From Macrostomum lignano (taxonomy: Eukaryota): a stretch of DNA of 64,000 bases. This document shows positions 3,905-60,296 of the stretch, piece after piece. The translations under genes and the position numbers were made by a program. The stretch covers positions 124,001 through 188,000 of the forward strand of contig NIVC01000151.1 in NCBI GenBank assembly GCA_002269645.1. Direction: 5' to 3'. Position 1 is the stretch's first letter. Each line of letters opens with the position of its first letter. The notes beneath the pieces were generated by a model that worked only from the letters and a program-made list of their open reading frames with translations, was not told where the DNA came from and ran no database searches.

Positions 3905-3933
3905 CCACATCAGCTCATGCCGCTGCCCCGCAG

Positions 3934-21052: not shown

Positions 21053-21112
21053 ATGCATTATAAGCAGCAGGACTGCAAACTTAAGAAAATTTTCACCTGG
21101 CCGACTCGGCAG

Positions 21113-26840: not shown

Positions 26841-27014
26841 CTGCAATGCAGGGCGGGTTCGAGTCACCAAGGCTTGGGGTGCCCCCTGCCCTCGGGTAGC
26901 AGCAGCTCAGGCTAAACTCACCGACTCCTGCCGCTCTGGCAGGGGAGACTTTGTCCGACGCCACGGAGTCCTCTTTTGAGTGGAAGGCCTCTGAAATCAG
27001 AGTGGAGTTTGAGA

Positions 27015-29940: not shown

Positions 29941-30060
29941 CTGGATGCAGAGGAAAAGTTTTAATTCAAGATCAGTGAATTTGTTGATTTTAATGAACCA
30001 AGTATCTCAATTGATTCGCCGCAAATGGCTATTATTGGCCGCTATTGCACAATATCTCAA

Positions 30061-30246
30061 GGCTGTTCAGTCCAAGGACTGGGGGTCGCCATACCCACCC
30101 TCAATTACCTGGCACCCATTTTATAGCTGGGTGAACTGAAGAAATGCAGAGTTGAGTGTCTTGCTCAAGGACAAATTGTTACAGTGGGGCTGGGAATTGA
30201 ACAACCAACCTCAGTTATGAGTCTGAGCTCTACCCACTAGACTACA
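30061..30246 (-). mobile_element. Second copy of the CORE-like SINE
   Basis: A box TAGTCTAGTGG, B box GTTCAATTCC, same CORE-like block and CCCAGTCCTTGGACTGAACAGCC segment as the 17390 copy. Confidence 0.7.
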
Positions 30247-31399: not shown

Positions 31400-31500
31400 T
31401 ATCTAATTTATAGCTAGGTGAACTGAAGCAATACAATATAAAGTTAAATGTTTTGCCTAAAGACGCAAATAGTTCTAGTGGGATTGGGAATCAAATTTCT
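31400..31500 (-). mobile_element. Eroded fragment of the same SINE
   Basis: TTTATAGCTAGGTGAACTGAAGCAATA aligns to the 30061 copy with many G>A and C>T changes. Confidence 0.5.
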
Positions 31501-31788
31501 AACCATGAAAATAAAGTAGAATCAATATTTAAAAATAAAATAAATCTTGTATTAATAATAGGCAGTTGTTATTTGTCTAGTGACTGAACAAATAATGATA
31601 TGGTTGTTCATTTGGTTATTAGATAAATAGCCATAGTTCACTATTTGTTTAGTTAATACTAGAAACAGGCATTTTGTTATTTGTCTATTTAAATTGATAA
31701 CACTAATTATTTCAATTTTTACAATGCATTTTCAAGACTTTAAAGATTCTTAATCTTATTCAAAACTTGATTATTATATTTTCATACT

Positions 31789-32080
31789 CATACATGCGCA
31801 GCCTCCAAAATTCGGTCAGCTATGCGACTTAGTTTTAACAAAAATGCCTATAGTTTTTGGCCAAAAATGGGACTTACATGTAAAAAAACCCTAACGCAAA
31901 ATTAACGCAACTTTGGGTAAACGGCAGGAGTAACTATAACTGTCTTATTAGGTCAAAATGCCTCGTCAGCTACTTAGAACTGCACTGGTATTTTTTGGTG
32001 GGCATTTTTGTGACTTCCTTGGTTGGCCGCCAAATTGGTCGGCCGGATCGGCCAACTCGGCAAACTGTTGCGCATCTATG
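31789..32080. mobile_element. hAT-type MITE in onecut intron
   Basis: TIR CATACATGCGCAGC / GTTGCGCATCTATG; 8-bp TSD TTCATACT / GTCATACT with 1 mismatch. Confidence 0.75.
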
Positions 32081-32355
32081 GTCATACTAGTATATATCTT
32101 GACTTTTTTGTCTTCTTATTTTTTTTTCTCTCCTTTTTTTTCTCAAATTTTCATTTTTCACATTTTTGACTTTGCAACTTAGGCCTTGGCTAGTGGCTAT
32201 TTCACCCATTTAGTTCAGATATGTTGGATGGGTATTGGGCATGTATATTTATCTAGATTCTAGTATTAATTGAAAAAATAGTGGTAATAGCTTTGTTTGA
32301 TAACTAAAAGAATAACCACTTTGCTTATTTGTCTAGTCACTAAACAAATAATAAT

Positions 32356-32720
32356 GGGGGCTGTAGCCCAGTGGTCTAGCGCAGGCTCTGGTATGCCAGC
32401 AACCTAGGCTCGATTCCAAGTGCAGTTACATTTATTTGGGGCTGAATTGGAATCTTGGCTTGGCTCTGCTCATGCAATTAACGCCTAACGGCCTTGAAAG
32501 CCAACCCCCAAGGCGCAGTGAAGTGTACATGCCTAACGATAAATTAAAGTTAGGGCCCCTATACACTCCTGTGTGAGTGTGTGCCTGCGTATGTATCCGC
32601 GCTTGTATGCCTACTCAGGGGAGTCGGCGGAATGGGCAGTAATGCCTCTCGCTGGTTGTGCCTATGTTGCTTAAAGTGCACCAGGGTGCACACAACCCCC
32701 TGCCTCTAATAAAAAACAAA
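32356..32720 (+). mobile_element. tRNA-headed SINE, different body, related 3' tail
   Basis: A box TAGCCCAGTGG, B box GGCTCGATTCC; 3' CAGGGTGCACACAACCCCTGCCTCTAATAAA resembles the tail of the 17390 SINE. Confidence 0.55.
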
Positions 32721-32939
32721 TAATAACTACTGTATTATTAATATATAACTTGATATCAATACAACAATAATAATAGGGGGCCTATTAAGCTAAATTATAT
32801 CATTAAATAGGCTTATTAACAACCAATAGCAATAGTTCACTTAGTCTTAAGTTCTAAAAATTATATATAAAAATATATTTATACAAAAAATACTTGTTGG
32901 TATTATTAAAGTATTAAATATATTGAATATAAAACTTAC

Positions 32940-33942
32940 CAATAAACTCTGTTTTTACACTAGGCTTCAACTCAGATGCAGAAGACTCAGATTGGATAAA
33001 ATAGGAATTAGTCAAAATCTGACTTGTTTGACTTTGAGTAACTTGCTGCTGTGGTTGAAAAGAATTTGGTTGCATAAAAGAAGTTGTTTGTCCTTGGCCT
33101 TGAGTTTGCAGGATTGTTTGGCCAATGGGCAATGTTGCTTGCAGATTCAATGGAGCAAGTACTTGGTTATACTTATTAAATTCATTAGCAGTTGCATTGT
33201 AGCTTCCTTGCTTTAATTCTAAGCCATTCAACAAGGGATTATGATTTGTGAATGGCTTTATATCTTGCACTTGAAGTCCATAGTTTGCATTATTAGGCTG
33301 CTGGGAAATGGTATAACCACTTGAAGCATGAGCAATAGTTGGATTACAAAACTTGTCTGTTGTAGTTGCAATAGTTGGCAGGGAAGACAAAGATCCTATT
33401 GTAGTGTAGTTTGCACCAATGCTACCATAAGTAGGGCTGATGTGGCTGCCACTCAAAGCATAGGAGTCACTTCTATAGCTTGTTGAAGAATCCAGCATGC
33501 TGCTATCTGGTAGGTTAATTGGTAGAGCAATTCCTGATGAATTGATTGAACTTGCTTGTGGAATCTGAGTAGCAGCAGATGACGTGACAATCAGATTCTC
33601 GGGTTGTTGCTGCATTGGCAGCGATGGTGCAGCAAGCAGGAGAGGCCCAGCGCCCAGCTGGTTTGGATCAACATTGATGAGAGTAATCGTGACAGTTGGG
33701 TTGTCTGCTGAGCCATCCACCTTGGGCAAGCAAATCGCTTGCTGAATAAGCTGCGTTAGCTGCTCATGAGTCAGAGTTATATTCTGACTTTGAGATTGTG
33801 ACACTGGTAGCTGGGATGCGACAGTTGGGTTAGCAGCAATAAGCTCAGGTAAGCTCATGGCAAGTGGTTGAGATGACATCTGAACGTTTCCATTGGATAG
33901 GAGAGCAGTAACCGGCTGAGCCTGGACTTCCATCGCTCTCAT
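32940..33942 (-). CDS. onecut: Onecut probable first coding exon (Gln/Ser/Thr/Asn-rich)
   Basis: 1-kb open frame ending in G|gtaagt; phase 1 matches the CUT exon. Start ATG at 33942 or 33933. Assigned by phase and position, not by homology. Confidence 0.7.
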
Positions 33943-34855
33943 GAAAATCAAAAGCAATCAATAATAAAACACAGTAGTCATTGGACTTGACTGTACGATA
34001 ATTTGTCAAAACGAAGTCTCCAACTCAGAAGGTTGAAAACAGTCAATGTCGGTCAATAATTTAAAGGGGAATTTCGAAACCCATGTATAACAAGTAAGTA
34101 ACAACAACGCGCAGACTTTGATTCGCGCAACTTGTCAATTTTAGACAAAGTAGATCCACTGACGTGCTAAACTCTAGGAGTTTTAATGATTCAGTAGACA
34201 GATTTTTGTAACCTAAAACTCAATGTGTTATAGTTTTATTAGCTTTTTTAAGAAACGCATTGGAAACTTTGTTTTAATCGCAAGATTTCAGTTTTAAAAA
34301 TTGAGCTAATAGGATCTGACTCCGGGCCTTTTCATATTACCAATTCCAGAACCAGAATCGGTTCGGAATTCCAAGAAAAACAGCAGTATAACTATTAAAC
34401 TCTGTTAATATTTGACTGCCTTAACAACCTAACTTAGCACAATTTTTCACTTTCTTCTTGGCGATTGTCATTCAATAATTAAGAGAGTTTATAGCAAGTA
34501 TATCCCTCTAGTTAAGGAGACAAAAAGTTATACTTTACAAATTGGTTCTGGTTCTAGAACTAGAACAAGCAATATGAAGAGCCTCTAGCGCATTTAGCCC
34601 CATTCAAATTAAAAATTCAAACACTGAAAACGTTAAAAAACATTGTTTTTCAAATATTTGAGCCAATTCCAAATCTAATTTTTAATCGTTTGAAGTTTTA
34701 TAGCACACTAAGCCCCCATGGTGGGCGTTCAAATTCAAAATTCAAACATTGAAGGCATGAAAGCATATTTTATATACCAATTTGCTTAATGAATCTCAGT
34801 CGTAATTGGGCCCATTTGCTTACTGCCCTAATCTGCAACTGCGCCACCCTCTCTG

Positions 34856-35178
34856 CAGTGGCGTAGCCAGGGGGGGGCGAGGGGGCCTGGGGGGTTGGAT
34901 TGGGCGCGGCGGGTACCAAAAACCATGAGGCCATTGAGTGCCTGCGGCGCCAAAATGAGTGTCTGCGGCGCCAAAATAAGTTCCTGCGGCGCCAAAATGA
35001 GTGCCTGCGGCGCCAAAATGAGTGCCTGCGGCGCCAAAATGAGTGCCTGCGACGCTAAAATGAGTGCCTGCGGCGCCAAAATGAGTGTCTGCGGCGCCAA
35101 AAGTGGCAATGGCATAAGGCATGGCCAGCCAAGCCAACCCGCCCCCCCCCCAATTGAAATTTCTGGCTTACGCCACTG
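34856..35178. mobile_element. hAT-type MITE with internal 21-bp tandem repeat
   Basis: TIR CAGTGGCGTAGCCAG / CTGGCTTACGCCACTG; perfect 8-bp TSD CCTCTCTG (34848-34855, 35179-35186). Confidence 0.88.
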
Positions 35179-35412
35179 CCTCTCTGTGTTGTAAAATAAC
35201 CCAAGATCATATACACTGTAGCAGTTTAGTGGTTGATGAAAAAAATTGGCTTGTTTCGTCCACACACATCGCAATTCAGCTTTAACTCAGAGACTACTTA
35301 AACTAAGTTAAGTACGAGGGCTATCCCAAAAGTAAGTTTCGCTATTACTATAAAAGACAAACTAGTTAATCCACAATCAACAAAACTTTGCAACTGCAAA
35401 ATGAACTCATAG

Positions 35413-37083
35413 TTACTCTACAAATTTGCCGCCGAGGTCAACGCACTTCTGCCAGCGGCGCACCCACGCCTCGAAGGCAGGGCTGCAACCGCCAATGGCC
35501 AGATGCCGGAGAGCTGATGAAGCACACTGTTATTAATTTGCTCCACCGAGGCAAAACGTTGACCACGAAGACGATCTCCTTCATCATTGGGAAAACGTAG
35601 AAGTCCGCCGGAGCCAAGTCAGGCGAATAGCTCGGCTGAGACAGAACTTCCCAGTCCCAGGACTTTAGGAGCTCTTCCACTCTTCTGGCGCGGTGCACAG
35701 GCGCATTGTCGTGATGGAAGATGACGCCTCTCTCCAGCAAGCCAGGTCGCTTCTTTCTGATCAGTTTCTCTTGCAGAATCCATTTGTAATATTCCGCATT
35801 CACCTTGGTAACGACTGGCACAGGCCAGTCCATCAGAATGTCATGGACGTCGAAGAAGATGATGTGCATCACCTTCGTTGAACTCTGCTTGCGCTGCACC
35901 TTCTCCGGGCTTGCTGATCCCTTTGGAAGCCACTGCGCTGACTGGCGCTTCAGCTCAGGATCTCATTCTTAGATCCAAGTCTCATCCCCTGTCACAATCC
36001 TGCTGAGGAAGTCGTTGCCTTCTCGATGAAATCGACGAAGCTGCTCTCTGGACAGCCTCACCCGCTCCTCCATCTGCTTTTTTGTCAGCAGGTGGGGCAC
36101 CCACTTGACGAAGATCTTCTGCATGCCCAAGTTCTCAGTTAGGATGCGATACACGCTCGGCATTTGCGTTGATGGTAGCTGTTCTCGGCCTTTCGCAGCG
36201 CTCTTGCTCTTCCATACACAGCCTCCCTCTCAGGACCTCACGATCACGAACCCACTTGAGCACTGTCTGAACTGATGGAGCTTCTTCTTTTAAAACGTCT
36301 CCAAGCTTTTCACGAATTGCAGTTGCAGATTTGTTGTTAAACGGGGGTGGGAAGCTACGGGGCTACCCGCGGATCAGCCCTTGGAGGGGCTCTACCGCAA
36401 GAGGGCACTGTCCAGGGGCACAGATAAAACTGTACCCGAGATACCCGCTCGGAGTCCGAGTCACCAATTTAGTTGGGCCCCAGCTTAAGCTAGGGAAAGA
36501 GCGAGGGACTTCAAGCCTACGGTACAAGACACTGCCAACCCAACAGTGGAATCAGGGACGGTGCTAGGACCGAATCCACCCAGACCATCCCCCCAGCTAG
36601 CGAGTCTTTTGGGTGTGCGCAGAAAAATTGGAAAACGAAATGTTTGGGGTACTACTGAAAAAAGCGGTCCGAGTGAGGAGTTACTCCTAAACCTGCGGAA
36701 ATGGCTTAAACTATTGGAGCGAGTCTGGGCAGCTAATTACCAAGAGCGATCCTAGCAGGGTTGGTATGCCGGCTTAAGCCGCCCTGGTGGTCTCGAGCCT
36801 CAAGGCTTTTCACTACCCAGCTCTATTTTGGAGTGAGTCTGGAAGGCTTGTATCCGAGGGGGAGACTCTAGGCGGACCTACGACGCCTCTATTGCTACCA
36901 ACCCAAGGGCATCGCCTATCCAGCTCATTATTGGGGGCCAGGCCAAGGGGTCGGGAGAAAGGCACCCGGGGCAAGAGGACTCCGGACTCAGCCGGTTGTC
37001 CCGTGTTGCCGATTTCCAGCCAAAACTCCAAACTTGATGATGTTCTGAACGTCAAACCGAGTGAACGAAGCTGACGCGGCCAT
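35413..37083 (-). pseudogene. Mariner transposase pseudogene
   Basis: N-terminus MAASASFTRFDVQNIIKFGVLAG (37083-37015) continues as KSATAIREKL after the insertion. Motifs WVPHLL, TGDETW, HDNAP, YSPDLAP; in-frame stops near 35960-35971 and frameshifts; ends KFVE* at 35413. Confidence 0.88.
36333..37010 (-). mobile_element. 678-bp insertion in the mariner transposase (non-autonomous retroposon-like)
   Basis: Flanked by GATTT direct repeats (36328-36332, 37011-37015); on the minus strand it has a 5' stem-loop and an (AAC)n-like 3' end; no recognisable coding domain. Confidence 0.65.
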
Positions 37084-38210
37084 CTTTGCAAAAGTCTGTT
37101 TGATTAAAGTGATGCTAAAGTCACCCATGTTATACGCAACACACAGCAAAGCTATTACAATAATCCATGTCTCATCCAGTGCAATAATCACTGTCAGTTT
37201 TTTCTCTTGACGATTATTTTAGATTTAGTATACTTTAGTATATTTTAGTATATCAGAAGAGTAGGCGTTTGGTAGGTAGATTTCATAGGTAGATTCTATG
37301 ATTTGAACCCTAAACCTAACCCCAAAACTGACCCGGCCTAAACCCTAATCCTAACACTATACGTGAGTCTTAGCATCTTAGCAACTCCCGTATAAACCTT
37401 CAGCCTCAACATTTAAGCAGCTCCGTAAGCCCTGAACTATCAGCAATCCCCCCAGGAGCCTTGGCATCTCAGCAACTCTCCAATGAGCCACAGCGTTTCG
37501 CAGGGTCCCCGTGCCGTTTAGGCAACGAATCCATGTAACCAATGAAGACGTTGATTTCCAATCAGAGAGCAGGAATATACGAAATATCGGAGAGCTTATC
37601 AGAATATCAAGCGTTTATTGACTGACGAGTAAAAAATGATTAGCCAAATGTGGTTAAACATTTAGCAGTCTCTACTTTAAATTCAATTAAGGACAGATTC
37701 TCCACTTTGGTGTTAAATATCAGAGTTTGCAGTTGCCATGGTCCGTGTTTGCATGTCGCACCAGCCAGATGCCGGAGGCCAACTCTCACAATTAGTAAGG
37801 TAGCTGCTATGAATTTAGATTGCTTGTTTGAGTTTCCCAACCGGATCTGAATTTTGCTCAAATAGTAAAGCCTAACCTGGGTTTGGATTGGGAAAAACTG
37901 ACTCTTAATTCTAATGGAATTTGCACAATTTTATCTACAATTCGTTATAAGACTGCATGGGTGGCAACTGCAGTATCCAGATCAGGTTCCGCAAAGTAAA
38001 TTTAGTGCGGAAATTGACAAACAGTGGAAAATGGATAAATGAAGATTGGATATACTATTTTCTAAGAGCTAAAATGACTTGTCTAAATTCTAGAAAGCCC
38101 TGCGAAGCAGTCAATAACTGCTGGAGTAAAATATGCCCATGAAATTTGATTGCAACGCATAGTCAAGGCAGAGGCAAATTCATGAGTTTGCTGGGTCAGA
38201 TAGATATAGG

Positions 38211-39195
<985 letters not shown>

Positions 39196-39315
39196 TTGTC
39201 AGAATTTATTAGAGATTATTCTAGACTCGTGCAAGCTGTGGGTGGCTTTGGGGATGACCTGTGCTGTGCTGCCAGCTTTGGCCGTTTTTTCTGAAACCGA
39301 TCGCATACCTAGATA

Positions 39316-39592
39316 CCTGTTTGTCTGTTTGTCTTAGTGGTCAGTTTGTCTTAGTAGTCTGTTTGTCTTAGTGGTCTGTCTGTCTTAGTAGTCTGTTTGT
39401 CTTAGTGGTCTGTTTGTCTTAGTGGTCTGTTTGTCTTAGTGGTCTGTTTGTCTTAGTGGTCTGTCTGTCTTAGTAGTCTGTTTGTCTTAGTGGTCTGTTT
39501 GTCTTAGTGGTCTGTTTGTCTTAGTGGTCTGTTTGTCTTAGTGGTCTGTCTGTCTTAGTGGTCTGTTTGGCTTAGTGGTCTGTTTGTCTTTC
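39316..39592. repeat. 17-bp minisatellite GTCTGTTTGTCTTAGTG
   Basis: Tandem units visible. Confidence 0.92.
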
Positions 39593-40012
39593 TGCCTACC
39601 AATAAGAGTCTTATTAAAAGCTTTGCTAAGAAGTAGCTCGTAGAATTTCATCATTCCGTGCATTCTGTGGTCACACTCTGTTGTCTATGGTCAAAATCGA
39701 TCAAAGGTTTCGCCGGCTACATGATCAGCAGGTAACGAAGTGTAACGGAGCGTCTTGCTGTTTTATTTTCCAACTTAGGTACATTGCTAAATATCAAAAA
39801 GCCTTAAAGCCATTTTCTGCAGCTGCTGCAGCATATGCGACACCAAGGTGTTGATGTGGCAACAGAAATCGATTAGAATTTATTCGAGTTTATTTGAGAC
39901 TCGTGCAGCTGTGCTGCCAGCGGGAGGCCCATTGTTAAAACTTTAGGTTTGATTAAGACCAACAGTCAAAATTCCTATCGGGCTGTCATGAAAAAACCAC
40001 GCATTGATTTCT

Positions 40013-41382
40013 TCAATTAGCGCAAAAGTTCTCCAGCTCGCGCAGCTCCGAGAGGCCAAGAGCCGCCTTCGCAGTTGCGTAGCAAACCATTCGGCCTCTG
40101 AGGACGTATTCAGAGTTGCTGTCAAAGCCGAGTCTCAGGCACCGAGGCGCCTTTGTCTTACTCCACTCCAGGTCTGCGTCAGCGGCCAGAAATGACTGGT
40201 TCAGGTAGAAGGTGCTGAGGCTCTTCCCGGTGAACACGGCTGCGGACGACACGAGCTGAGCAACGTTGCTGGTTGAAAGCGGAGCCGCGCTGGACTGGCG
40301 AGTTTGCTGATAGTTGGGCCACGTTGACTGGCTGGGAAACGGGTGCTCCACCCACAGCCGGCCCCGCGGTCCCCGAACCTTCCAACGAAGACACCCGAGC
40401 AGTCGTGGAAGAAGTGGTAGCTCTGCTGGTAGTAGGTGCGTCTGATCACCCTGGCGAAGAAGGTGAAGTTCCTCGGATGGTCCAGGTAGTTGGTGCCGAG
40501 AGCGCCGCCGTCTGTGTCGACATCGATGAAGTTAGAGCTGCCTCCGGGAAAGTGGGCGCCTCGTTCGTCTCTGGTTATCGAGCCTCGAGGAGTCGCTACG
40601 TACTTTGAGGGATCGACGACGTTTTTGAATCCTTTGCGGAAGTCGAACAGGATGAGTAGCTTCGAGAGCAGGGCGGAGCTGAGGCTGACGGCAGTAGCCG
40701 CAGATGTAGCAGACTTTGCTGCATTCACAGTGTCTGGAGAGGTCATACTCGGAGCGGTTGTTGTCAGAGCGGTTGTTGTCGGAGAGGCTGTTGTCGGAGA
40801 GGTTGTCGGAGCGGTTGTTGTCGGAGCGGTTGTTGTCGGAGCGGTTGTTGTCGGAGCGGTTGTTGTCGGAGAGGCTGTTGTCGGAGAGGTTGTCGGAGTG
40901 GTTGTTGTCGGAGCGGTTGTTGTCGGAGCGGTTGTTGTCGGAGAGGTTGTTGTCGGAGAGGTTGTTGTCGGAGAGGTTGTTGTCGGAGCGGTTGTTACCA
41001 TTGAAGCATCGGACGCCCCAGAAGCTGCTGTGGTTCCTTGGTCTCCGGTAGTCCAGTTTGAGATCCTGACGTGGCTGACGCACCCAGGTGCCGCAGACTC
41101 CACAAACAGAGTTCCCAGCTGCTCAGCGGTACCGAAGTAGCACACGGAGTCCAGGTCCAAAGCTCTGTGCAGCACGGAGCAGCTTTTGTCGGAGGCGCAC
41201 TCGATAAAGCAGGCCCGAAGGTCTCGAAGGCCTTCGAGGCGTCTCAGCTGGATGAGGCTTGAGCTGTCAGTTGGGCATTTGGATACTTTTTGAAAAACAA
41301 CCTTGGTGCTGGTACCGGAGCTGCTGGTTGCACCTGCGGCTGCCACAGCCATCAGGATGAAGCAAGCTGTGTAGGTCATCAT
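40013..41382 (-). CDS. Secreted protein: signal peptide, PAN/apple-like Cys domain, (TTAPT/TTSPT)n mucin-like stalk, LamG/ConA-like C-terminal domain
   Basis: Hydrophobic N-terminus MMTYTACFILMAVAAAGA; CFIECASDKSC...C pattern; 15-bp coding repeat at about 40741-40995. A 47-nt GT-AG intron (40378-40332) joins ORF 40201-41382 to ORF 40013-40351 in frame; a 1-nt frameshift is the alternative. Confidence 0.7.
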
Positions 41383-46706: not shown

Positions 46707-47384
46707 TCACAGAGCGAGTCACGGCCAGACCAACTGGCCAGTGCAGAGAAGCTCGGCCTGCGGATTGTCTGAAATGAGAAAGTCGCAGGTAAAAATTACA
46801 CAAAGACAGAGCTACATAAAGTTTATGGCATTAGAATTCTCCTTGAGCAGAAAGTGAAGTTTTTGACCAGATTGCCTTTGGTCATAAACATAAACTGAGT
46901 CACCATCAGGTAAGTTTTACTTTCAGTTGATGCTGTTTTTTAATTTGGAATTTCCAAGAAGATATGGCTTGGCAAAACTGATGTAGCCAGCCACCTTATC
47001 GGTGTGAGAGCCCCCCGCGCAGCCTGGCTAAAGGGCGATCAGCACAAGAATCGCAACCTGGGCCAATATTAACAAATGAAATTCCCAATTCTGCCCCAAA
47101 CCGACCCAGCAGTCGGACGCGAGAGAAAAATCTTCCAATTAGAAAACCGTGCATGAAAAAATGTCAGACAGTCCTGCAGTTATTCGGCAGTGGCTAAGGT
47201 AGAGTGCATCAGATCGCACTAGGGTGGTGGCTGCAGGAGGCGAAGCCACCGATCTGTCAGGCCGGAGCTGCTAGCTGGATTAGATAAAGATAAGCCCCGC
47301 TCCCCTCCTTCGCCCCTCCTCCCCACAGAATCCGCCAAGTGTTTACGAGCGCAAAACTGCATCCCCAGCCAGCCGCTGACCAGG

Positions 47385-48337
47385 GATTCCCCGAAAGAGA
47401 TTCTGGAGTGGAAGGCCAGGGAGTCCCAGAGAGCGATTCTGGAGAGGAGTCCCAGAGTGAGATTCTGGAGCGGAAGGCCAGGGAGTCCCAGAGAGATCCT
47501 GGAGCGGGAGTCCCAGAGAGATCCTGGAGCGGGAGTCCCAGAGAGAGATTCTGGAGCGGAAGGCCAGGGAGTCCCAGAGAGAGATCCTGGAGCGGGAGTC
47601 CGAGAGAGAGATTCTGGAGCGGAAGGCCAGGGAGTCCCAGAGAGATCCTGGAGCGGGAGTCCCAGAGAGAGATTCTGGAGCGGAAGGTTAGGGAGTCCCA
47701 GAGAGAGATTCTGGAGCGGAAGGCCAGGGAGTCCCAGAGAGAGATCCTGGAGCGGGAGTACCAGAGAGAGATTCTGGAGCGGAAGGCCAGGGAGTCCCAG
47801 AGAGAGATCCTGGAGCGGGAGTACCAGAGAGAGATTCTGGAGCGGAAGGCCAGGGAGTCCCAGAGTGAGATTCTGGAGCGGAAGGCCAGGGAGTCCCAGA
47901 GAGAGATTCTGGAGCGGAAGGCCAGGGAGTCCCAGAGAGAGATCCTGGAGCGGGAGTACCAGAGAGAGATTCTGGAGCGGAAGGCCAGGGAGTCCCAGAG
48001 TGAGATTCTGGAGCGGAAGGTCAGGGAGTCCCAGAGAGAGATTCTGGAGCGGAAGGCCAGGGAGTCCCAGAGAGAGATTCTGGAGCGGAAGGCCAGGGAG
48101 TCCCAGAGTGAGATTCTGGAGCGGAAGGCCAGGGAGTCCCAGAGAGAGATTCTGGAGCGGAAGGCCAGGGAGTCCCAGAGAGAGATTCTGGAGCGGAAGG
48201 CCAGGGAGTCCCAGAGAGAGATTCTGGAGCGGAAGGCCAGGGAGTCCCAGAGTGAGATTCTGGAGCGGAAGGCCAGGGAGTCCCAGAGAGAGATTCTGGA
48301 GCGGAAGGCCAGGGAGTCCCAGAGTGAGATTCTGGAT
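47385..48337. repeat. 36-bp minisatellite GAGATTCTGGAGCGGAAGGCCAGGGAGTCCCAGAGA with shorter variants
   Basis: Tandem units visible. Confidence 0.95.
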
Positions 48338-49089
48338 TCCAAAGAATTTCCTTCCTGATTTTTTATCTTAAAATTGGCCAAGTTTCAAAGTTTCAACGCT
48401 GCAAAATGCTGAATTTTCCAAAAAATAAAACTTTAAGTCCGTGCGGGAAGACTTTACAATAATTGGCCCAAAGTTGAAGCAAACATGCATTTTCGGTGCT
48501 CGGGGTCCAGTCCAGGTCTTTAGTAGTTTTCGGCGTCCCCCGGCCTGACCCTCCAGTCTCCCGACAGACCATCAGCTGGGGCAGCCACTGTGGGGGTGGC
48601 GGGGGAGGCCCCGACCTGCAGCCGTAAAACTTGCACTGCGCCCGCCAAGAGGGCCAATTTCTGCCTGCCTCCCCTGTTCTTTGTTCTTTTGATTTCCCTG
48701 CCATTTTGGCCGGGTTCCCCCTGCCTGGCCGGCGCAGCATCCCATATTTCATTATCCCCGATTTCCCCCCTAGCAACCCGGCGCGTGGGCCGAGGGCCCT
48801 TTGCGCAGCAGCGGAAAGTTGGTTCTGCCGCGGGGCTCCCCGGATTTGGAGCGGCATCACCTGTGGCCTGTGGTTTATGGCTGGCTGGGGGGGAATTGGG
48901 GATAAAAAATGCACAACAATTTGCCCTGCACAATTTCTTTAGAGTTGGCAGATTTTGGCAATACAGCGACAGAGCCTGCCAGACTGGCCGCCTGCTGCTG
49001 GGGCGTTGCGGCACTTGCGCTGCGCGATACGCCATGACTAAAGAAAATGAAGAACAACAGGAAATTTGAGTGAAGAGAAGAGAGACAGA

Positions 49090-49895: not shown

Positions 49896-50432
49896 TGCTC
49901 ACATGAGGTGGCCCCCCCTTATCTGATTGGCCCAGCGCCTTCCCGAGTGGCTCACATGAGGTGGGCCCCCTTATCTGATTGGCCCAGCGCCTTCCCGAGT
50001 GGCTCACATGAGGTGGGCCCCTTATCTGATTGGCCCAGCGCCTTCCCGAGTGGCTCACATGAGGTGGGCCCCCTTATCTGATTGGCACAGCGCCTTCCCG
50101 AGTGGCTCACATGAGGTGGGCCCCCTTATCTGATTGGCCCAGCGCCTTCCCGAGTGGCTCACATGAGGTGGGCCCCCTTATCTGATTGGCCCAGCGCCTT
50201 CCCGAGTGGCTCACATGAGGTGGGCCCCCTTATCTGATTGGCACAGCGCCTTCCCGAGTGGCTCACATGAGGTGGGCCCCCTTATCTGATTGGCCCAGCG
50301 CCTTCCCGAGTGGCTCACATGAGGTGGGCCCCCTTATCTGATTGGCCCAGCGCCTTCCCGAGTGGCTCACATGAGGTGGGCCCCCTTATCTGATTGGCCC
50401 AGCGCCTTCCCGAGTGGCTCACATGAGGTGGG
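49896..50432. repeat. 51/52-bp minisatellite spanning an exon end and splice donor
   Basis: About 10 units; the minus-strand unit contains CCCACCTCAT|GTGAGC. Confidence 0.95.
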
Positions 50433-50594
50433 CACGAAAGAGCCGCCAGCTGCATTGGCGGGGCCGCCAGTCATGTGGTAGGCAGCGGCCGTGGCGGCAG
50501 CCGCCAGCTGCTGCTGCTGCTGCTGCTGGCTGGTCGGCTGGTAAACCGGGGCGCCGTTCTTGCTGTCGGCCACAGCGGTTCGCTTGCTGGCGAC
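50423..50594 (-). CDS. mbl: Muscleblind-like exon (VASKRTAVADSKNGAPVYQPT...SFVPTS)
   Basis: tttgccag acceptor and T|gtgagc donor. KR..D-K-x-G-x-P-V-Y-Q-P...FVPxSC matches my recollection of the invertebrate Muscleblind C-terminal region. No CCCH zinc fingers were seen in the window. Confidence 0.55.
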
Positions 50595-53114
50595 CTGGCA
50601 AATTGAGCGGGATGAAGCGGCAGCTGTCTTAGTGCTCTGGGCAGCTTGTGATGGAGATTAGCCGGCTGGGTGCTCAGGGTTAGAATGTTAGAAACAATAC
50701 CACTTCAGCAATTTGAAAGGGTTCGTGCTATTGAAAACTGCTGTAACTAAGATTAGGTGGTACCGCGGTTTCGTCATCATAACCAGGAGGCTGTGCTCTT
50801 TGATACACCTGTGCCCCATCATCGGAAACCCTCGCCAGGGAATTGCGGCAACAATAAGCGGCCCTCTGACGCAACGGGAAGTCGTGGAAAATACTTTTCG
50901 AATGCAGAAAACGATAGGAAATATTAAGGCAGAGGCAGTGGGGGGAGGGGTCGCCGGCCCCCTGCTGGGTCTCGAGACCGCTCGGAGGAAATTTCATTAA
51001 CTTCTGTCCCACTCCGCCAGCAGGAGGCGGGGGCAGCATCCCCTCCCGACACCCCCTGCCGCCCCATTCCGAGCCTCCTGGGGACAATTTTTAATAGCCG
51101 GAGATTCAGCGGGCGGCCGCCTCATGAATTATTGATTGCCGCCCGGCTGCCCCGCCCCGCAGAAGCAGCTGCGGCCAAGACTGAACTCACTCGGCCGGCC
51201 GGCCGCAGCGTCTCAGCAGAGAAGACGGTCAGTTGTTGCTGCACCGAATTACTCAGCTACTCTTTTTCTTCTTTTTAAAAAAATCTATTTTTTGAAATTC
51301 TTTTCGAATCGGCGATCGGCGATCCAGCGGCGGCGGCTTCGGTGCCTCCGTCGCTGCCAGCCGCCGAATTTCTGCGCCCGAGCCCGGCGGGGGGTCGTAA
51401 AAATTTTATTTTTGCGTCTCTCCCGGCGCCTGCGCGCTGAGAGGCCGGGCAATGGGAGAAGAGAGTGCAAAAAACAAACGGGCTCTGGGCCTCGATGCTG
51501 GGCGGAATCTGGGGGCGGATGGGTGGGGGGGCGCTGAGTCTGGCGATGCTCAGCTGCCAAACTGGATGGCGGCCCGCGGGACTCATAAGGATATCACAGG
51601 CGGCTGCACTGGATATGGCCCGAGCCTGATGGGCTGCGTGCGGAGTCGTGGGAAAGAAGGAGAGAACTCGATGGGGAGAGACTTGCATTGGGGTTACCTC
51701 GGGGATCTCATGGAGAGAGTACTACAGAATGAGGTATCTCAGGGAGAGGATTGACTGGGGAAGAGGGTATCTCAAGGAGAGGGTACTTCAGGGAGAGGGT
51801 TACCTGGGTGAGGGATACCTCGTGAAGAAGGTACCTTTGTGCGTGATTATCTGGCGACGAGACCTCCATGACCTTATGTGAGGCCAGGGCTGTTTTTTAG
51901 GAGTTTTTTAAGACGGAGCCTCACGAGCGCCTGAGTCATAACAGCCTCACCGGGAGGAGGTGCGGGCTGAGTGGGAGCTACCAGAAGCGATAATTACAGC
52001 TGGGGTCTTCAATTTGCGCCGGCCATCTCGGCCAGCTCGGACACTGCCGGACAGGAGAGGCCATAAAGCGCGCAGCTCGGACAGGGAAATGATGATTGAG
52101 AAAGGCGAAGGTGATTAGCATCAGATGAAGCTAGGGGCAGCTGGCCAGCAGGCAGGTGACCGTCATTAGCTCCGAGAGTCGAGGACTCAAGTCGCCTTGG
52201 AGCAGGGAGGAGCTGCGAGGGCCGGAAGCAGCTGCGATCGCAAGGAAATGGCGAGTCCCAGACAGCCCGGGGGACTCCGCGCTAAAAGCAAGCCAATTAC
52301 TTGAGCGCAATAAAATCCCAGCCGAAATGGGGATACAAATTCAGGAGAGCTCGGGATTCTCCCTCCTCCTTTTCTCGTCTTTTTTCTGTCTCCATTTTCC
52401 GTCTTTTGCCGCCACCCCCGCCCGCCCCAGAGTCTGGCCTTCAGCTCGCGGGACTTTACGACACCCGCGGTTTATGGCTGAGCCGCCCCCAGCCCGGGGA
52501 GAAGGCAGATTCTCGCAGCTCGAGAACTCGACACGATGAATGGCCCGCTGCGCCATGGAGCTCCAGTCCCAAACATCTGGAGCGGAAGCAGCCGATCCAG
52601 CAGCCCGTTGGTTTCGGCTCGGCATGAGGCTACGCAGCTGAAAACTCGCAGCTACGTGCCTTATCGCTGCTGCTCAGAGCTGGCTAATGCGACTCGGCGC
52701 ATGCCAAGTTAAATATTGAGACAGGGTGGGGCGACCGCTGATAGTCTGCGGCCCGGCCTGTTGATGGAGAAGCGGCACAAGTCAGGCAAGCAGAGAGCTT
52801 AAGTTGGGCCCAGAGCCAATTAGAGAGGCACATGGAAATTCGATTGCACAGCACTGACAAGCTGACGACGAAACGAGAGACGGGTCACTTCACTTCACAG
52901 ATCGGCTCTCCAATTAGGAAATAGTAATTAGCCAAAAATTATCCAAGGTAAAATCCCCGGAGTTGAGCGCTGGTTAATTTAGTTACTTTGCTAATGGCTT
53001 TGTTAGGCTGCCGTGTGAGAGCTGTGCTTGAGAAATGAACTGCATTGCTAGATGGTTAGAGGGGCTGATTGCACAGCAACTACTGCTCCCTGGTTATCAA
53101 GAGCTTTGACTGAC

Positions 53115-53382: not shown

Positions 53383-53683
53383 GGAGTGTTGAGGCGTGAG
53401 TTTGGGTGTGTTGAGGCGTGAGGTGGGTGTGTTGGTGAGGTGGTTGTGTTGAGGCGTGAGGTGGGTGTGTTGGTGAGGTGGTTGTGTTGAGGCGTGAGGT
53501 GGGTGTGTTGGTGAGGTGGTTGTGTTGAGGCGTGAGGTGGTTGTGTTGAGGCGTGAGGTGGTTGTGTTGAGGCGCGAGGTGGTTGTGTTGAGGCGTGAGG
53601 TGGTTGTGTTGAGGCGTGAGGTGGTTGTGTTGAGGCGCGAGGTGGTTGTGTTGAGGCGTGAGGTGGTTGTGTTGAGGCGTGAG
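53383..53683. repeat. 21-bp minisatellite GTGGTTGTGTTGAGGCGTGAG (left of retrotransposon)
   Basis: Tandem units up to the element junction. Confidence 0.95.
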
Positions 53684-54157
53684 CCGGGGCTGTTGCCCCC
53701 AGGACCCCGGGTCCTGCACGTAATGGCGTGGTGAACTATCTGTGCAGTATGAGACTGGTATGGCCTTTATCCCAGCCAGCGATGCTCACACCTGCCTCCC
53801 CTGGCGGGCTGATAGCTCAAGAGACTCTGTCTCCTGATTTTCACCTTGCAAGGCGCACTTCGAAGGGTACTCGTCCCGTGGGTGTTAAGGCAGGCCCCCT
53901 TGGGCCCTGCCGAGCTGATTCGTTGGCGCCGGGTCCTGGTGTGACCATAAACGCACCCTCTAATGTCCCAGTGTAACTCCGTGCTGATGGACGCTTGGCC
54001 AGGGAGTAGTCTGGTCGCTAACGGTTCCCCTTGCGCTTTTGGGTCCCCCCGCAGGGTGGTATTTTGCTTTTTGGGGCCTGCCGCTTGGTTTGGGGTTGCG
54101 GCCTTGCGGCTCTTTGCCTGTGTTCTGCAGGAAGTCCCACCTTTTTACTTCCAGCCA

Positions 54158-55678
54158 ATGGCTTCTAACCGAAGTAACAAACCGGCTGTGGATGACACAG
54201 TGCCTCCGGCCTCGGCTGGGGCCGTGGACTCCTCGGCCATACCACCTGCTACCATCGGGGACGCCTCGGCGAGACCCGTGGAGCCAACTCTGAGCGGTGC
54301 CTCCGAGAAGACACCTGCTACTCCAGCTGCTAAGAAACGCAGCACCACCTCTGGAGCTGCCCGCCGTCGACTTAACAAGGCGAGGCGGGCCAAGGAGGGC
54401 GGAAGCCAAACCGGTGCCAGGGGCCAACGGCCCGCGGCAGCGGAAGCTTCCCAGTCTGGGGCGGTGGCGGAAGAGGGCCTCGAGCCCACGGAAGCCCCTG
54501 CCCAGGATAGGGAGGCCGATGCAGCCGGGAGGGTGGACAGCCCACCTGAAGAAAGCTCCACTGACCCCCGGGCCTCCTACGCTGATGCGGCAAAGAGGCA
54601 ACCGGCGGTTGTCATCCTGGGAAAGGACGCGCGCCTGTCTCCCGATCAGCTGAAGCAGGTGAGAAGTGCCGTTGATGGCCTCCTGTGGAAGCAAACTCTG
54701 AAGGGCACGCCTCTGAACATTCATTCGAATGCGACGAGGGACTCGTGCCTTCTCATTTGGCCCAGTGATGCTGACTCGGGTCGGCGGCTCCTTGAGCTGC
54801 TGCCCGAGCAGAGCTGGGACCTCAACCTAGCCTTCTGCAGAGAGGACGAGCGCCCCCGGACCAAGAGGCATCGAATCTGGGTCCCGGCCAGGAGCGTTGT
54901 TACCTCTGCTGACGAGCTCCGGAAAGGACTGCTAGCAGTCAACCGGGAGCTTCCCGCCGCGGGCCTAGTGGTGCATGACACCCTTAAGCGCACCGACGGC
55001 ACTGGCTTCACAGCCATCCTGGGGCTGTCGGACGCCTGGATGAGGCGTTATCCACACGGCAGCTTCATCAACGTCGGCCTTTGGAAGCTGCGCATCCGCT
55101 CCTACGAGGCCGACCCTCCCCGTGGCAGTGAGCAGGGCGGGCGGGATGCGGAGGCGGCCGGGGCCGAGGCGCAAGCCTCTGCTCAGACTGCCAAAGCAAA
55201 CCGCCCTGCCCGGCAGCACGGCCGCGCGGGCAAAGCTGAGCGCGCTGCTGAGGGCGGAGGCGACCGACGCCCGGCGCGTAGCACCAAGCGGCGCGGCCTG
55301 TACCAGCGTGCAGCTGAGGCAGTCCGTACCGCCAAAATCTCCCAGCTGAGGCGAGAGGTCGCCGGGACGCCTAGGCGCACCAGTTCGTCCAGGGAGGGTG
55401 GGGACGTCCCAGCTGGGCCCAACCCCTCGGGGCAGGGCCGACTGGAGACGGACCCGCCTGCCCAGGCGGCTGGCTGCTCCAGGGCATTGGGCCAATCTGA
55501 GGCGGAGGACCCCATGGATGGTGGGCAAAGGGCGGCGAACGCTGCCTACTGCCTTCCGGCCAATCGGGGGCCTTTTGCTGAAGAAGAGCCCATGGACACC
55601 GGCGACCCCGACCCGAAGCCGGTGAGCGCCGAGGAGGAGGAGGAACTCCTGGCGGCTGCAACATCCGATCTGCAATGA
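54158..55678 (+). CDS. Retrotransposon ORF1 (gag-like position; Ala/Pro/Arg-rich, no clear CCHC knuckle)
   Basis: Long open frame 53963-55678, first ATG at 54158; its TGA overlaps the ORF2 ATG (ATGATG at 55675-55680). Confidence 0.85.
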   Translation: MASNRSNKPAVDDTVPPASAGAVDSSAIPPATIGDASARPVEPTLSGASEKTPATPAAKKRSTTSGAARRRLNKARRAKEGGSQTGARGQRPAAAEASQSGAVAEEGLEPTEAPAQDREADAAGRVDSPPEESSTDPRASYADAAKRQPAVVILGKDARLSPDQLKQVRSAVDGLLWKQTLKGTPLNIHSNATRDSCLLIWPSDADSGRRLLELLPEQSWDLNLAFCREDERPRTKRHRIWVPARSVVTSADELRKGLLAVNRELPAAGLVVHDTLKRTDGTGFTAILGLSDAWMRRYPHGSFINVGLWKLRIRSYEADPPRGSEQGGRDAEAAGAEAQASAQTAKANRPARQHGRAGKAERAAEGGGDRRPARSTKRRGLYQRAAEAVRTAKISQLRREVAGTPRRTSSSREGGDVPAGPNPSGQGRLETDPPAQAAGCSRALGQSEAEDPMDGGQRAANAAYCLPANRGPFAEEEPMDTGDPDPKPVSAEEEEELLAAATSDLQ

Positions 55679-58600
55679 TGCCAACGACTACCTGGTGTCT
55701 GCAGATCAACACCCAGCACTGCGTGGCGGCGTCGGTCAACCTGATGCGCACGGCAGAGCAACAGCTTCCGGGCCTGGTCTTCGTACAGGAGCCCTGGATG
55801 ACTAAAGGTAAGCCAAATAATGTGCCATCTGGCTACCACTGTTTTTGCATGGCGGGCTCTCAGCCTCGCCCAAGATCTCTGGTCTTTGCTGCAAAAGCTT
55901 TTGAGGCATGGATGAGACCTGATCTCTCGACTGGGGACATCTGTGTTGTTCAAATCAATAACCTCATTCCCAATAAACCTGTGCTGGTAGCTTCTGCCTA
56001 TTTCCCGGGCGATGCCCCAGTTGTCTGCGACGCGTTAGTCAACCTTACTGACTATGCTGCGTCCCATCGGTTCGAGCTGCTCATTGCAGGGGATGTGAAC
56101 GCACACCACCTGCATTGGGGCAGCAAGAACATCAATAGCAGAGGCGAGGAGCTGCTGGCCTATGTCAGCAGCACTAACCTCAACTTCTGTAACGTGGGCA
56201 ATGCACCAACGTTCAATAATGGGCGGTGGGCCGAAGTCATCGACACCACCATCGCCTCACCCGGACTGCTTTCCGCAGTTACGGGCTGGCGAGTGTGGGA
56301 CGAGGACTCGCTCTCGGACCACCGCTTTATCCGCTTTTGCATTGGGCCGACCAAGCAAAAGCCTAAGGTCACTTGGAGTCGGAACGTCAGAAACACCGAT
56401 TGGGCCGCCTTTGGCTCGAAGCTGAGCCGCGGCCTTCGGGATCTTGACCCCCCAGTGACCTCTCTGACTGCCAGGTGGTGGACGATCTCGCCTCCTCCCT
56501 GGGCGGGGCGATCACCACTGCCTTTGAAGCAGCCTGCCCCTAAAGGCCTATAAAGGCAAGAAATCTGCTCCCTGGTGGAACCCAGAGCTCGGGGCCCTTC
56601 GGCGCCGAGCCAGGACCCTCCAAAGGCGAGCGCTCAAAACCAAAGACCCATCTGACAGAGAGGCCTATACCCGTGCGATCCACGAGTTTAAGGGCCAAGT
56701 CAGAAGGGCCAAGACGGCCAAGTGGCGCCAATATTGCGAAGGGCTTGAGGGCTCTCGCCCCGTAGCCCGCGTGGTTAAGGCACTCACTAATGACCGTTTT
56801 TCTAAACTCTCTGTTGTGAAGAGACCTGACGGCTCGGTCACAGAGAGTTCGGAAGAGACTCTAGAGCTCATGCTCAACAGTTTTTTCCCTAAATCTCCGA
56901 CTCAGCAGGGCCCGCCCGACCACACAGTGGGAGGGCAAGGCCTAGCAAAGTCTATGATCACCAAAGACCGCATTATTAGAGCGGCAAGGTCCTTTAACCC
57001 GTTCAAGGCGCCTGGGCCCGACGGCATCTACCCAGCGTTCTTGCACGAGGCGGTGAAAAACCACCGCTTCCTGGACCTGCTCTGTCGTCTCCTTCGAGCT
57101 TGTATGGAGCTGGGCTATGTACCAGTTGCATGGAGAGAGGCCCGGGTGGTCTTTATCCCCAAGCCTGGAAAGAGCGACTACCAATCGGTGAAGGCCTTCA
57201 GGCCTATCAGCCTCACTTCTTTCTGCCTCAAGCTCCTCGAGAGACTGGTGCTTTGGCGCCTACTTTCGGTCGAGCTGAAGCGCTTCCCACTCTCGCAGAA
57301 CCAGCACGCCTTCCGCGCGGGCAGGTCAACCGAGAGTGCTCTCCATGTCATTGTTGACTTCCTGGAGAGGGCCGTTCTTGGCAGCGGCTTTGCCCTCTCG
57401 CTTTTCCTGGACATTGAGGGGGCCTTCGACAACGTCATCTTCGAGGCCTTTTGCAGAGCCCTGGAATCCAGGGCCACGCACCCTCACCTTGTCCGGTGGA
57501 TCATGTTCATGATCCGAAACCGCACTGTTGTGGCCCACCTGAGCGGCAGCTCTCTTTCGGTGCCTGTCCTGAAAGGGGGCCCCCAGGGCGGCGTTCTCAC
57601 CCCCGTTCTCTGGAACATGGTCATGGATGAGTTGCTTTGCAGTGATCTCCACGACCCCATTCTCAAGGTGGGCTATGCCGATGATGTGACCGCGATATGC
57701 GCGGGCCCCTCGGTTGATACCATCAGAGACCTTCTGCAGGGCTTTCTGGGACGAGCGGAGCGTTGGGCAGACCAATGTGGCCTTAGACTCTCAGAGTCGA
57801 AAACCACAGCAGTCATGTTTACCAACAAACTGCTCTGGACCATTAAGCCCCTCACCCTCTATGGAAAGAATATTTCCATGGAGAAGCAGGTCCGCTGCCT
57901 GGGCCTCACTCTGGACCACAGGCTTAACTGGACTCCGCACATTCAAACTAAAGCCAAAAAAGCCCTGGCTGTACTGGCTCAGATCAGGCGCGCCGTGGGC
58001 ACCACCTGGGGGCTCACCCCCAGGAAGCTGTGGTGGATTTACACTGCCATCATCCGCCCCTCGATCAGTTACGCCAGCCTCGTGTGGGCTAGCGGCCTGA
58101 GCGTCAAGAGCAACCTCGACGCTCTCTACAAAATCCAGGGCAGAGCCTGCCGCATGACTATGGGCGCTCCACCCTCTACTCCTTTTGAAGGCATGAATGC
58201 CTTCCTCTGCGCCCCTCCTTTGGATATTTATATCAAAGGAGAGGCGGCGAAGAGCACCCGGCGTCTTCTGGATGCTGGGGTGGCCTTCAAGAAAGTGCGG
58301 GCCTTTAAGAAGCGGTCGCTTATCCCGCACTCTGACCTCTGCCTCAAGGCTCTCGAGGAGTGTGGCGGGCTCAACATCCTCACGGACTCGATCCCAGCCA
58401 CCCTTCTCCTGAGCCAAAGGTATAAGGTCACCATTCAGCCTCGACACGAGGCGAGTGACAGCTGGAGCGACTCTGAAGTCCACTGTTACACTGACGGCTC
58501 TATGAGGCATGGTCTTTCAGGCTTCGGAGCTTGCGTCTTCTTCAAGGGAGAAGTGGTGTGGAGCTACTCCCAGCACACTGGGCTCAACTCCAGTGTTTTT

Positions 58601-59377
58601 CAGAGCGAGGTGCTTGCCATCAGCTCCTGCGCGGCAGAGCTGCGCCGAAGGCAGCTTAGCGGCCGGAAATTTATTTTTCACTCTGACAGCCAAGCAGCCC
58701 TTCGGGCCCTCTGCCGCAGCACCGCCAGCTCCAGGTCCGTCCTGGACTGCAACACCCAGCTCAACGGGCTTGCGCTAGGCAACCAGGTGGAGCTCAGATG
58801 GATCCCGGGCCACGCCGGCTTCCTCGGCAACGAGCGCGCTGACCTGCTGGCCAAGGCTGGCTCCGCCGGCGCGCTATTGGGGCCGGGCCCGGGTGCCCCC
58901 ATCCCCGCCTCGGTGATCAATTCCCGCGTTAAGCGCTGGGCTGACTCCGAGCATCTCCGCAGGTGGCACGACACCCGGAATTGTAGGCAATCCCGTGCTG
59001 CCGTCCCCTGTCCCTCTCCTCTCCTGCGTAGAGCCCTCCTCAGGCTCAACCGCAGAGACCTCAGAGCAGTTAGCATGGCCCTCTCCGGGCATGGCTGCTT
59101 CTCTCGCCACCGCTTCCTTCAGGGCCAAGTACCCGAGGAGCGGTGCCCCTTCTGCCGCTCAGGCAGTGAAAACGCCGAGCATTTTATCTGCCACTGCCCG
59201 GTTTTCACCAGGGCCAGGCTTACTCACCTCGGGCCAAACCCGGTTCTCTCCGACGTTTGCAGGCCCGAGAGCATCCCACTGCTCGCCCGGTACCTCAGGG
59301 ACACCGGACGAGCTGATTTCTTCCCCACCGTCGGTGAGGAGGACCGCGCTGCAGGCGAGACCGACGGGTCCCCCTGA
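55675..59377 (+). CDS. Retrotransposon ORF2: AP endonuclease, reverse transcriptase, RNase H, CCHC; two apparent -1 frameshifts
   Basis: APE motifs VQEPW, GDVNAHH..WGS, SDH; RT motifs FLDIEGAFD, PQGGVLTP, YADD; RNase H motifs YTDGS, SDSQAA, WIPGH..GNERAD; CPFC-x8-H-x4-C. The frame breaks at C-runs 56448-56453 and 56537-56540. Confidence 0.9.
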
Positions 59378-59493
59378 GCGACACCACTTCAACGGAAGTC
59401 GTTGGTCGCCAGGGGCTAGCGGAATGGGCGGTCTCCTCCGCCTCCTCGCTGCATCCGCCGGACGCCCCCTGCAGCTAAGTCAAGTAAGTCAAG

Positions 59494-59735
59494 TTGAGGC
59501 GTGAGGTGGTTGTGTTGAGGCGTGAGGTGGTTGTGTTGAGACGTGAGGTGGTTGTGTTGAGGCGTGAGGTGGTTGTGTTGAGGCGTGAGGTGGTTGTGTT
59601 GAGGCGTGAGGTGGTTTTGTTGAGGCGTGAGGTGGTTGTGTTGAGGCGTGAGGTGGTTTTGTTGAGGCGTGAGGTGGTTGTGTTGAGGCGTGAGGTGGTT
59701 TTGTTGAGGCGTGAGGTGGTTGTGTTGAGGCGTGA
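59494..59735. repeat. Same 21-bp minisatellite (right of retrotransposon)
   Basis: The array resumes immediately after the element tail. Confidence 0.95.
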
Positions 59736-60296
59736 GTTGGGTGTCTTGGGTAATGAAGTTAACGATGAGCTTAAGATGTGATCATGTTATTGAACAATCT
59801 GGTTGCAAATCTTCATCTGGAGGGCTATCAAGCATCCCAGAAGATAATAATATTTAATTTGACTTGCATTAGAAATCTAAGACAGAATTTAACTATTACT
59901 ACCCAGGCGTCAAAGCACTTTTGCATTACTCGCACACAACAATACAGAAGCGATTCACAGGCATCGCTTCCCCCAGAATCTTGAGGACAATAATCCCCTC
60001 CGGCGCGCCAAAGAGGGCGGGAGTGCAGGGGGTTCTTCGGGCGCTGATAAGGCCAAGGCGCTCCTCGTAGCCACTGTTGCTGGGCCGGGGGGGGGGGAAT
60101 TTAGACGTCGAATGCTGCGGCCCCGGCTGACTAATGCGGCAGAGGATTTCGCAGAGACGGGAAGATAAGGCGGGCGGGCGGCGTGCGGGCGGGCGGGCGG
60201 GCAGGGAGGCTCTCATCGGCAACTCGATGAAAGTTTTGGGCGGCGGCGGCGACCGCGGCAGGGCGGGGCGGCTCCGCGGCCGCAGCCATTCATTAA

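Follow-up and report, generated by a model that had tools for sequence, protein, structure and literature searches.

Minisatellites that reiterate an exon-intron junction have been described in the human F7, IFI6, CBS, LMNB2 and PDGF genes (Borensztajn et al. 2006, PMC1557585). In intron 7 (IVS7) of F7 a 37-bp unit is present in 5-9 copies, the first monomer spans the exon 7-IVS7 boundary, and the first donor alone is used (PMC1557585). Fifty constructs of F7 established that the pseudo-sites are functional, yet they are outcompeted by the most upstream functional site (PMC1557585), which wins even against downstream copies that have been strengthened (PMC1557585). As the other cases are summarised in that paper, the authentic donor alone is used in LMNB2 (100-bp unit, 10-15 copies) and in intron 4 of PDGF (81-bp unit, 16-18 copies), and in intron 2 of IFI6 (6-16) and intron 13 of CBS splicing also uses the two copies that follow the first donor (Turri et al. 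1995; Yang et al. 2000; Lievers et al. 2001, in PMC1557585). The same summary gives CBS 15-20 copies of a 31-bp unit and IFI6 25 pseudo-sites (PMC1557585). A C. elegans paper on intronic minisatellites and splicing mentions neither mbl-1 nor the reiteration of donors (PMC4039745).

The window, ie the whole 64,000-nucleotide stretch of DNA that was analysed, carries on its minus strand a Muscleblind (Mbl) coding exon at 50423..50594 and a 52-bp minisatellite at 49897-50433 (10.3 copies, 98% matches, no indels, score 1037 in Tandem Repeats Finder). The array starts inside the last 11 bases of the exon, so that the exon's 5' splice site has been copied eleven times. It consists of 10.3 units of GCCCACCTCAT/GTGAGCCACTCGGGAAGGCGCTGGGCCAATCAGATAAGGGG with 11 identical donor sequences, and alignment of the units gives each of them 11 nt of exon (GCCCACCTCAT, 50433-50423) and 41 nt of intron. 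The original prediction had described a 51/52-bp unit made up of the exon end, the donor GTGAGC and about 41 nt of intron, which is correct except that it counted 10 exonic nucleotides instead of 11. Its estimate of roughly ten identical 5' splice sites after the exon agrees with the count of the 15-mer CCACCTCAT/GTGAGC, which has 11 copies, all on the minus strand, none elsewhere in the 64-kb window and none expected in shuffles. The authentic, most upstream 5' splice site, CAT/GTGAGC (50417..50425), has its last exonic base at 50423, and the corresponding bases of the following copies are 50371, 50319, 50267, 50215, 50163, 50111, 50059, 50008, 49956 and 49903; the donor-to-donor steps are seven of 52 nt and then 51, 52 and 53 nt. 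All 11 sites share the 9-mer CAT/GTGAGC, which matches the consensus MAG/GTRAGT at seven of nine positions.

A search of the whole window for the 34-nt intronic core of the unit found 10 copies, all inside the array. The final copy retains the junction alone and is followed by unique sequence. One unit is 51 bp, and a G>T variant is common to units 4 and 7, which suggests that a block of three units was duplicated; the 98% identity between units and this common variant are consistent with recent turnover. Since the unit is confined to one array in the window, an origin as a dispersed repeat or transposon was rejected and local duplication is indicated instead. No match was obtained in a search of Rfam, and scans of metagenome contigs with the repeat unit and with the exon matched neither.

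By the span of its unit and the repetition of an authentic donor, the array is a junction-reiterating minisatellite. As in F7, the first unit holds the exon end and the 5' splice site and is followed by sequence-identical pseudo-donors, and the copy number is similar (5-9 in F7, about 10 in the Mbl array). The units themselves differ, that of F7 having 37 bp with 4 exonic nucleotides compared to 52 bp with 11 in the Mbl array, and so do the donors, UGG/GUGGGU in F7 and CAU/GUGAGC in the Mbl array. In F7, donor usage has been measured and polymorphism documented. IFI6 and CBS, in which the donor is reiterated at the exon-intron border, are the closest precedent for the idea of a ladder of usable donors. 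In LMNB2 and PDGF the repeat fills much of the intron and reiterates the junction, and the units are longer than those of the Mbl array. The architecture is thus already known in human genes, and it reveals no new mechanism.

The exon is 172 nt long (57 codons plus 1 nt, acceptor phase 0, donor phase 1). Read from 50594 to 50423 it encodes VASKRTAVADSKNGAPVYQPTSQQQQQQQLAAAATAAAYHMTGGPANAAGGSFVPTS plus one T, and the open stretch of the minus strand ends ...GGCTCTTTCGTGCCCACCTCAT, followed by GTGAGCC. Upstream of the first codon, 21 codons away, there is an in-frame stop. The putative 3' splice site, ccgcttcatcccgctcaatttgccag/ (50595..50620, minus strand), gives the same phase as in orthologous loci; this 5' boundary of the exon is less certain than its donor. 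For the retrieval of Mbl proteins the zinc-finger region of Drosophila Mbl served only as bait and recovered 788 proteins. BLASTP of the exon peptide against the Bombyx 'protein muscleblind isoform X22' (P0006), which carries ...KRPAADKAGVPVYQPATTYQQLMQLQQPFVPVS-FTGHPPGVPRF, gave E = 2e-5, and the best BLASTP matches of the exon include annotated Mbl proteins of Lineus, Lingula and Sinanodonta. A two-sequence profile made with the Bombyx C-terminus found 24 more proteins carrying the same exon, and a 25-sequence profile found 256 proteins at E <= 1e-3 among 1.84 billion representatives. A profile HMM built from the 24 foreign exons only, and run against the six-frame translation of the window, gave one significant match, the Mbl exon ORF at E = 0.0025, the next best being 0.4. 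The short length of the exon and its Gln/Ala insertion keep the significance of these similarities modest.

Among animal Mbl proteins its counterpart is the conserved KRPAxDKSGxPVYQP...FVPVS exon. In the 25-sequence alignment the window peptide keeps the invariant columns K4, K12, G14, P16, V17, Q19, P20, Y39, V54 and P55, and the tblastn matches from many Mbl proteins to the window all stop at FVPTS. The closest relatives carry KRxAVADxKSG, which is longer by two residues than the insect version, and those of them that are named are Mbl proteins from a nemertean, a brachiopod and a bivalve; the pattern in the exon, KRxAVADxK-G, is nearer to lophotrochozoan than to insect Mbl. The residue after FVPVS in Mbl proteins is F, C, Y or S, all with codons that begin with T. 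Homology thus places the end of the exon, and its phase, at 50423. The identification of 50594-50423 as an Mbl exon, with its authentic donor between 50423 and 50422, is supported by these comparisons, and the gene structure (intron positions and phases) adds support for Mbl identity that is independent of similarity scores.

Four orthologous loci of other organisms (L001, L006, L007 and L010) were compared. In all of them a cag/ acceptor in phase 0 precedes the exon, and the donor follows one base past the S/T codon of FVPV(S/T). The acceptors, all in phase 0, read cag/GTC in the window, cag/GCC in L001 and cag/GCT in L006, and the donors are TCAT/GTGAGC in the window, ACAT/GTAAGT in L001, TCAT/GTGAGT in L006 and ACAA/GTGAGT in both L007 and L010. 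The Muscleblind assignment originally made from the letters of the DNA is thus borne out by BLASTP, profile, alignment and the conserved splice phases, and the donor position it gave, 50423, has a phase that matches these loci. A donor array was sought at the four loci and none was found, each having a single donor; the array in the window is accordingly a derived, lineage-specific gain. L001 is a marine metagenome contig in which (region 1618-1745) the intron after the Mbl exon is only about 90 nt long, and the mini terminal exon that follows encodes YGTTALTIPRYQ and a stop, the counterpart of the conserved FTGHPPGVPRF end. A search of the window for a counterpart of this mini exon did not find one.

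The exon could instead be a decaying Mbl remnant or a divergent paralogue, the multiplied donors of which would be without consequence. It is more divergent than any retrieved orthologue, with a Gln/Ala run in place of the YQQL...QQPF core and FVPTS with a T in place of V. The peptide alone had no match among 5.8 billion proteins, in a search where the word index needs several shared 5-mers, and zinc-finger and downstream Mbl exons were not recognised in the window. On the other side, the 57 codons are intact, both splice sites are in the conserved phases, and the diagnostic KR, K-x-G, PVYQP, Y and VP-x-S are retained. The zinc-finger exons, moreover, may be located farther upstream on the minus strand, past position 64000 and past an intron that bears a 5.4-kb retrotransposon. 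We consider a remnant or paralogue decidedly unlikely.

The consequences of using each donor follow from frame arithmetic. Donor 1 gives the 172-nt exon in phase 1, the conserved state. Donor 2 gives an exon of 224 nt (+52), which is open, adds CEPLGKALGQSDKGAHL and ends in phase 2; the shift from phase 1 to phase 2 had been anticipated in the original prediction. At donor 2, intron positions +2 to +4 form an in-frame TGA, which is therefore included by donors 3-11 (+104 to +520 nt) and by full read-through. The read-through product ends ..FVPTSCEPLGKALGQSDKGAHLM and a stop, as had also been foreseen in the earlier reading of a TGA in the next unit. The frame is therefore preserved by donor 1 only, every other donor leading to a frameshift or a stop, and because 52 is not a multiple of three the array holds no graded series of in-frame protein isoforms.

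In some transcripts the donor might be skipped altogether, giving a terminal isoform that would end at the TGA of unit 2 (..FVPTSCEPLGKALGQSDKGAHLM) and making the array a 3' UTR or retained intron. Many annotated Mbl proteins do cross the homologous donor (FVPVS-CEY..., FVPVS-CK...), some with tails of hundreds of residues, and the frame here stays open for 19 more codons. The read-through peptide is, however, unlike the Ser/Thr/Ala-rich tails of other species, and the nearest AATAAA/ATTAAA on the same strand is about 3 kb downstream, at 46944. Such an isoform is unlikely; it can coexist with the explanation that we prefer.

That explanation, which we consider likely, is a tolerated local expansion in which donor 1 is used and the other copies are silent or minor. 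A 52-bp segment of the exon-intron junction (11 nt of exon and 41 nt of intron) would have undergone tandem duplication and grown to about 10 units, probably by replication slippage or unequal exchange in a minisatellite-rich region. The outcome would be a single authentic 5' splice site with ten pseudo-sites of identical sequence behind it. By analogy with the mammalian genes, from which donor choice is inferred here, the spliceosome would use the most upstream donor and produce the 172-nt exon in the conserved phase 1. Little or no splicing would occur at the downstream copies, and their use would yield unproductive or truncated transcripts, through the frameshift at donor 2 or the in-frame TGA at donors 3-11. 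Complete silence cannot be assumed, given that IFI6 and CBS use some of their downstream copies. The array would then have arisen incidentally from the turnover of repeats in the region; it would probably be near-neutral, with a length that is probably polymorphic, and would not be a device for regulating isoforms.

The original prediction had gone further and proposed a copy-number-tuned ladder of donors acting on isoforms, NMD or autoregulation. Several donors would be used, and copy number or a trans factor, possibly Mbl itself, would set the ratio of productive to frameshifted or NMD-directed transcripts and so tune the Mbl level. The 11 donors are identical, and the frameshifts and stops produced by donors 2-11 would suit unproductive splicing. 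In the account of IFI6 and CBS given in PMC1557585, the pseudo-sites nearest the exon are usable. The homologous donor in arthropod Mbl genes (T/GTGAGT after FVPVS) is an alternative-splicing hub, from which transcripts splice to one of several exons, such as the FTGHPPGVPRF terminal exon or a second pair of zinc fingers, or read through into CEY... tails. The exon and donor position are the same as in the window, and the choice is made at a single donor; this gives regulated choice at the donor some precedent.

Other results do not favour such a ladder. MBNL proteins bind YGCY motifs (PMC3315501), and each unit contains one YGCY, at a density in the array of 2.23 per 100 nt compared to 2.31 for the whole strand; 56% of equal-sized segments have a density at least that of the array. 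Enrichment of MBNL-binding YGCY was thus rejected, the density being that of the background. The predicted fold of RNA made up of the exon end and three units is no better than that of shuffled sequences (z = +0.58), and an RNA structure that sequesters the donors was rejected on the same value. The array is absent from the four orthologous loci and so is not a conserved feature, arrays are abundant in the window and others also have splice-like motifs, and in the F7 mutagenesis the most upstream site beats stronger downstream copies (PMC1557585). With YGCY at background, an ordinary fold, no in-frame series, arrays everywhere in the neighbourhood and copies that are silent or little used in the genes of PMC1557585, the proposal of a regulatory ladder found no support, and we regard it as quite unlikely.

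A related proposal makes the array a copy-number-dependent attenuator. Donors 2-11 would be used, or would compete as U1 sites that are left unresolved, and their share would rise with the number of units, giving frameshifted or PTC-containing Mbl mRNAs. We consider this very unlikely; if it were true, length polymorphism of the array would set the Mbl dose between individuals. Each unit also carries CCAATCAGATAAG, a CCAAT box directly abutting a GATA-factor site (AGATAAG), and in a variant of the attenuator proposal the ten CCAATCAGATAAG motifs would make the array an intronic enhancer. An unrelated 55-bp array at 20527-21058 also has CCAATCAG, and the shared motif may be due to chance.

If tolerated expansion with use of donor 1 is the right explanation, the locus would be a clean non-mammalian addition to the small known class of minisatellites in which a 5' splice site is repeated. 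Loci of this kind offer a natural test of spliceosome choice between identical sites, and the rules that might govern that choice are scanning from 5' to 3', closeness to the acceptor and exon definition. The Mbl array could test the 'most upstream wins' rule of F7 outside mammals, and at a donor that is a splicing hub elsewhere.

The window contains 32 distinct minisatellite arrays, which make up 25.6% of its length, about one per 2 kb. As arrays are common throughout, it is unremarkable that one of them reaches an exon edge and a splice site. The length of the Mbl array, or its position relative to the exon, might be an artefact of assembly, near-identical 52-bp units being hard to assemble from short reads. 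Structured variants (the G>T of units 4 and 7, the 51-bp unit and the 53-nt step), unique sequence on both flanks and thirty-one other arrays of similar style in the window all count against an artefact, and make it extremely improbable. Conserved genes (Mbl, a T-box gene and a homeobox gene with Onecut-type sequence) stay intact in this stretch, one quarter of which is minisatellite.

Splice-like motifs were observed in other arrays. In a 36-bp array at 47380-48336, which shares the strand of the Mbl exon, an acceptor-like motif (...ccttccgctccag/; actccctggccttccgctccag/) recurs about 25 times. Acceptors as well as donors are multiplied in the region. The T-box gene has two exons at approximately 3090-3195 and 3934-4107 (region 2706-4110, plus strand; Pfam T-box E = 2.5e-35), the sequence of which we take to be Tbx2/3/omb-like. 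Its 738-nt intron (3196-3933) is 91% minisatellite, a 15-bp unit repeated 44.6 times at 3236-3904; the units contain donor-like GTGGGT or GTGAGT, and the flanking exons are intact.

The search for further Mbl exons in the window used CCCH and motif regular expressions and tblastn of 144 and then 286 Mbl proteins, and yielded one exon only. Neither strand of the window showed a CCCH motif or a zinc-finger exon, and tblastn with the tails downstream of FVPVS did not find the next Mbl exon there. The strongest nearby acceptor, judged by its pyrimidine tract, is ttgttcttcattttctttag/TCATGGCG... at 49037..49056 on the minus strand, a possible start of a downstream exon that has no support from homology. 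The acceptor at 49037 pointed out in the original prediction does exist, and its phase 2 does read IHGVSRSASAATPQQQAAS..., so that part stands; phase 1 is open too, and Mbl homology is absent. In phase 1 the candidate exon is open (FMAYRAAQVPQRP...) for 172 codons, which is longer than in phase 2, where the frame is also open (IHGVSRSASAAT...). The phase-2 peptide (IHGVSRSASAATPQQQ...) had no match among the tails of 126 Mbl proteins, and the candidate exon gave no alignment with the C-terminus of human MBNL1. The likeness of the phase-1 start, F-M-A-Y-R-A-A-Q-V-P-Q-R, to the terminal F-T-G-H-P-P-G-V-P-R-F was too faint to count. Of the two-exon peptide that had been put forward for comparison with Mbl proteins, the first exon matches them and the second, at 49037, does not.

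Two open reading frames downstream on the minus strand bear on where the Mbl gene ends. One, of 393 aa at 40201-41382, has a start that resembles a signal peptide, cysteines in its N-terminal part, a mucin-like repeat rich in Thr and Pro, and a globular part at the C-terminus, and has no convincing Pfam family; if it is a separate gene, the 3' end or next exon of Mbl lies within about 41.4-49.9 kb. The other, at 26179-26964 and about 24 kb downstream of the Mbl exon, is a homeodomain ORF (Pfam E = 8e-11) with the sequence AACKRKEE...RLVFTDIQRRTLHAIFKETKRPSKEMQ...NFFMNARRRS, which resembles the end of a CUT domain and a homeodomain of the Onecut type. Its place downstream on the same strand implies that the Mbl gene ends before it.

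The retrotransposon in the intron upstream of the Mbl exon is an apparently intact non-LTR element of 5.4 kb (53963-59377, plus strand), with a 571-aa ORF1 that has no Pfam match, an endonuclease (55675-56553) and a reverse transcriptase with RNase H (56771-59377). It sits inside a 21-bp minisatellite, the unit GTTGAGGCGTGAGGTGGTTGT being found on both sides (53386-53683 and 59493-59748). An ORF at 19205-19909 (plus strand) contains the start of a 3'5'-cyclic nucleotide phosphodiesterase catalytic domain (Pfam PDEase_I, E = 3.4e-17), with the sequence YHNQLHAIDVTQ...CHDVGHPG, and is overlapped by a 242-aa ORF on the opposite strand. Finally, 30000-40000 is an AT-rich block, with a GC content of 0.33-0.48 compared to 0.55-0.63 elsewhere. 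It contains a 347-aa Gln/Ser-rich ORF without a Pfam match (32914-33957, minus strand), a DDE_3 transposase fragment (35438-35899, minus strand) and a 1-kb (AGAT)n microsatellite (38198-39195).
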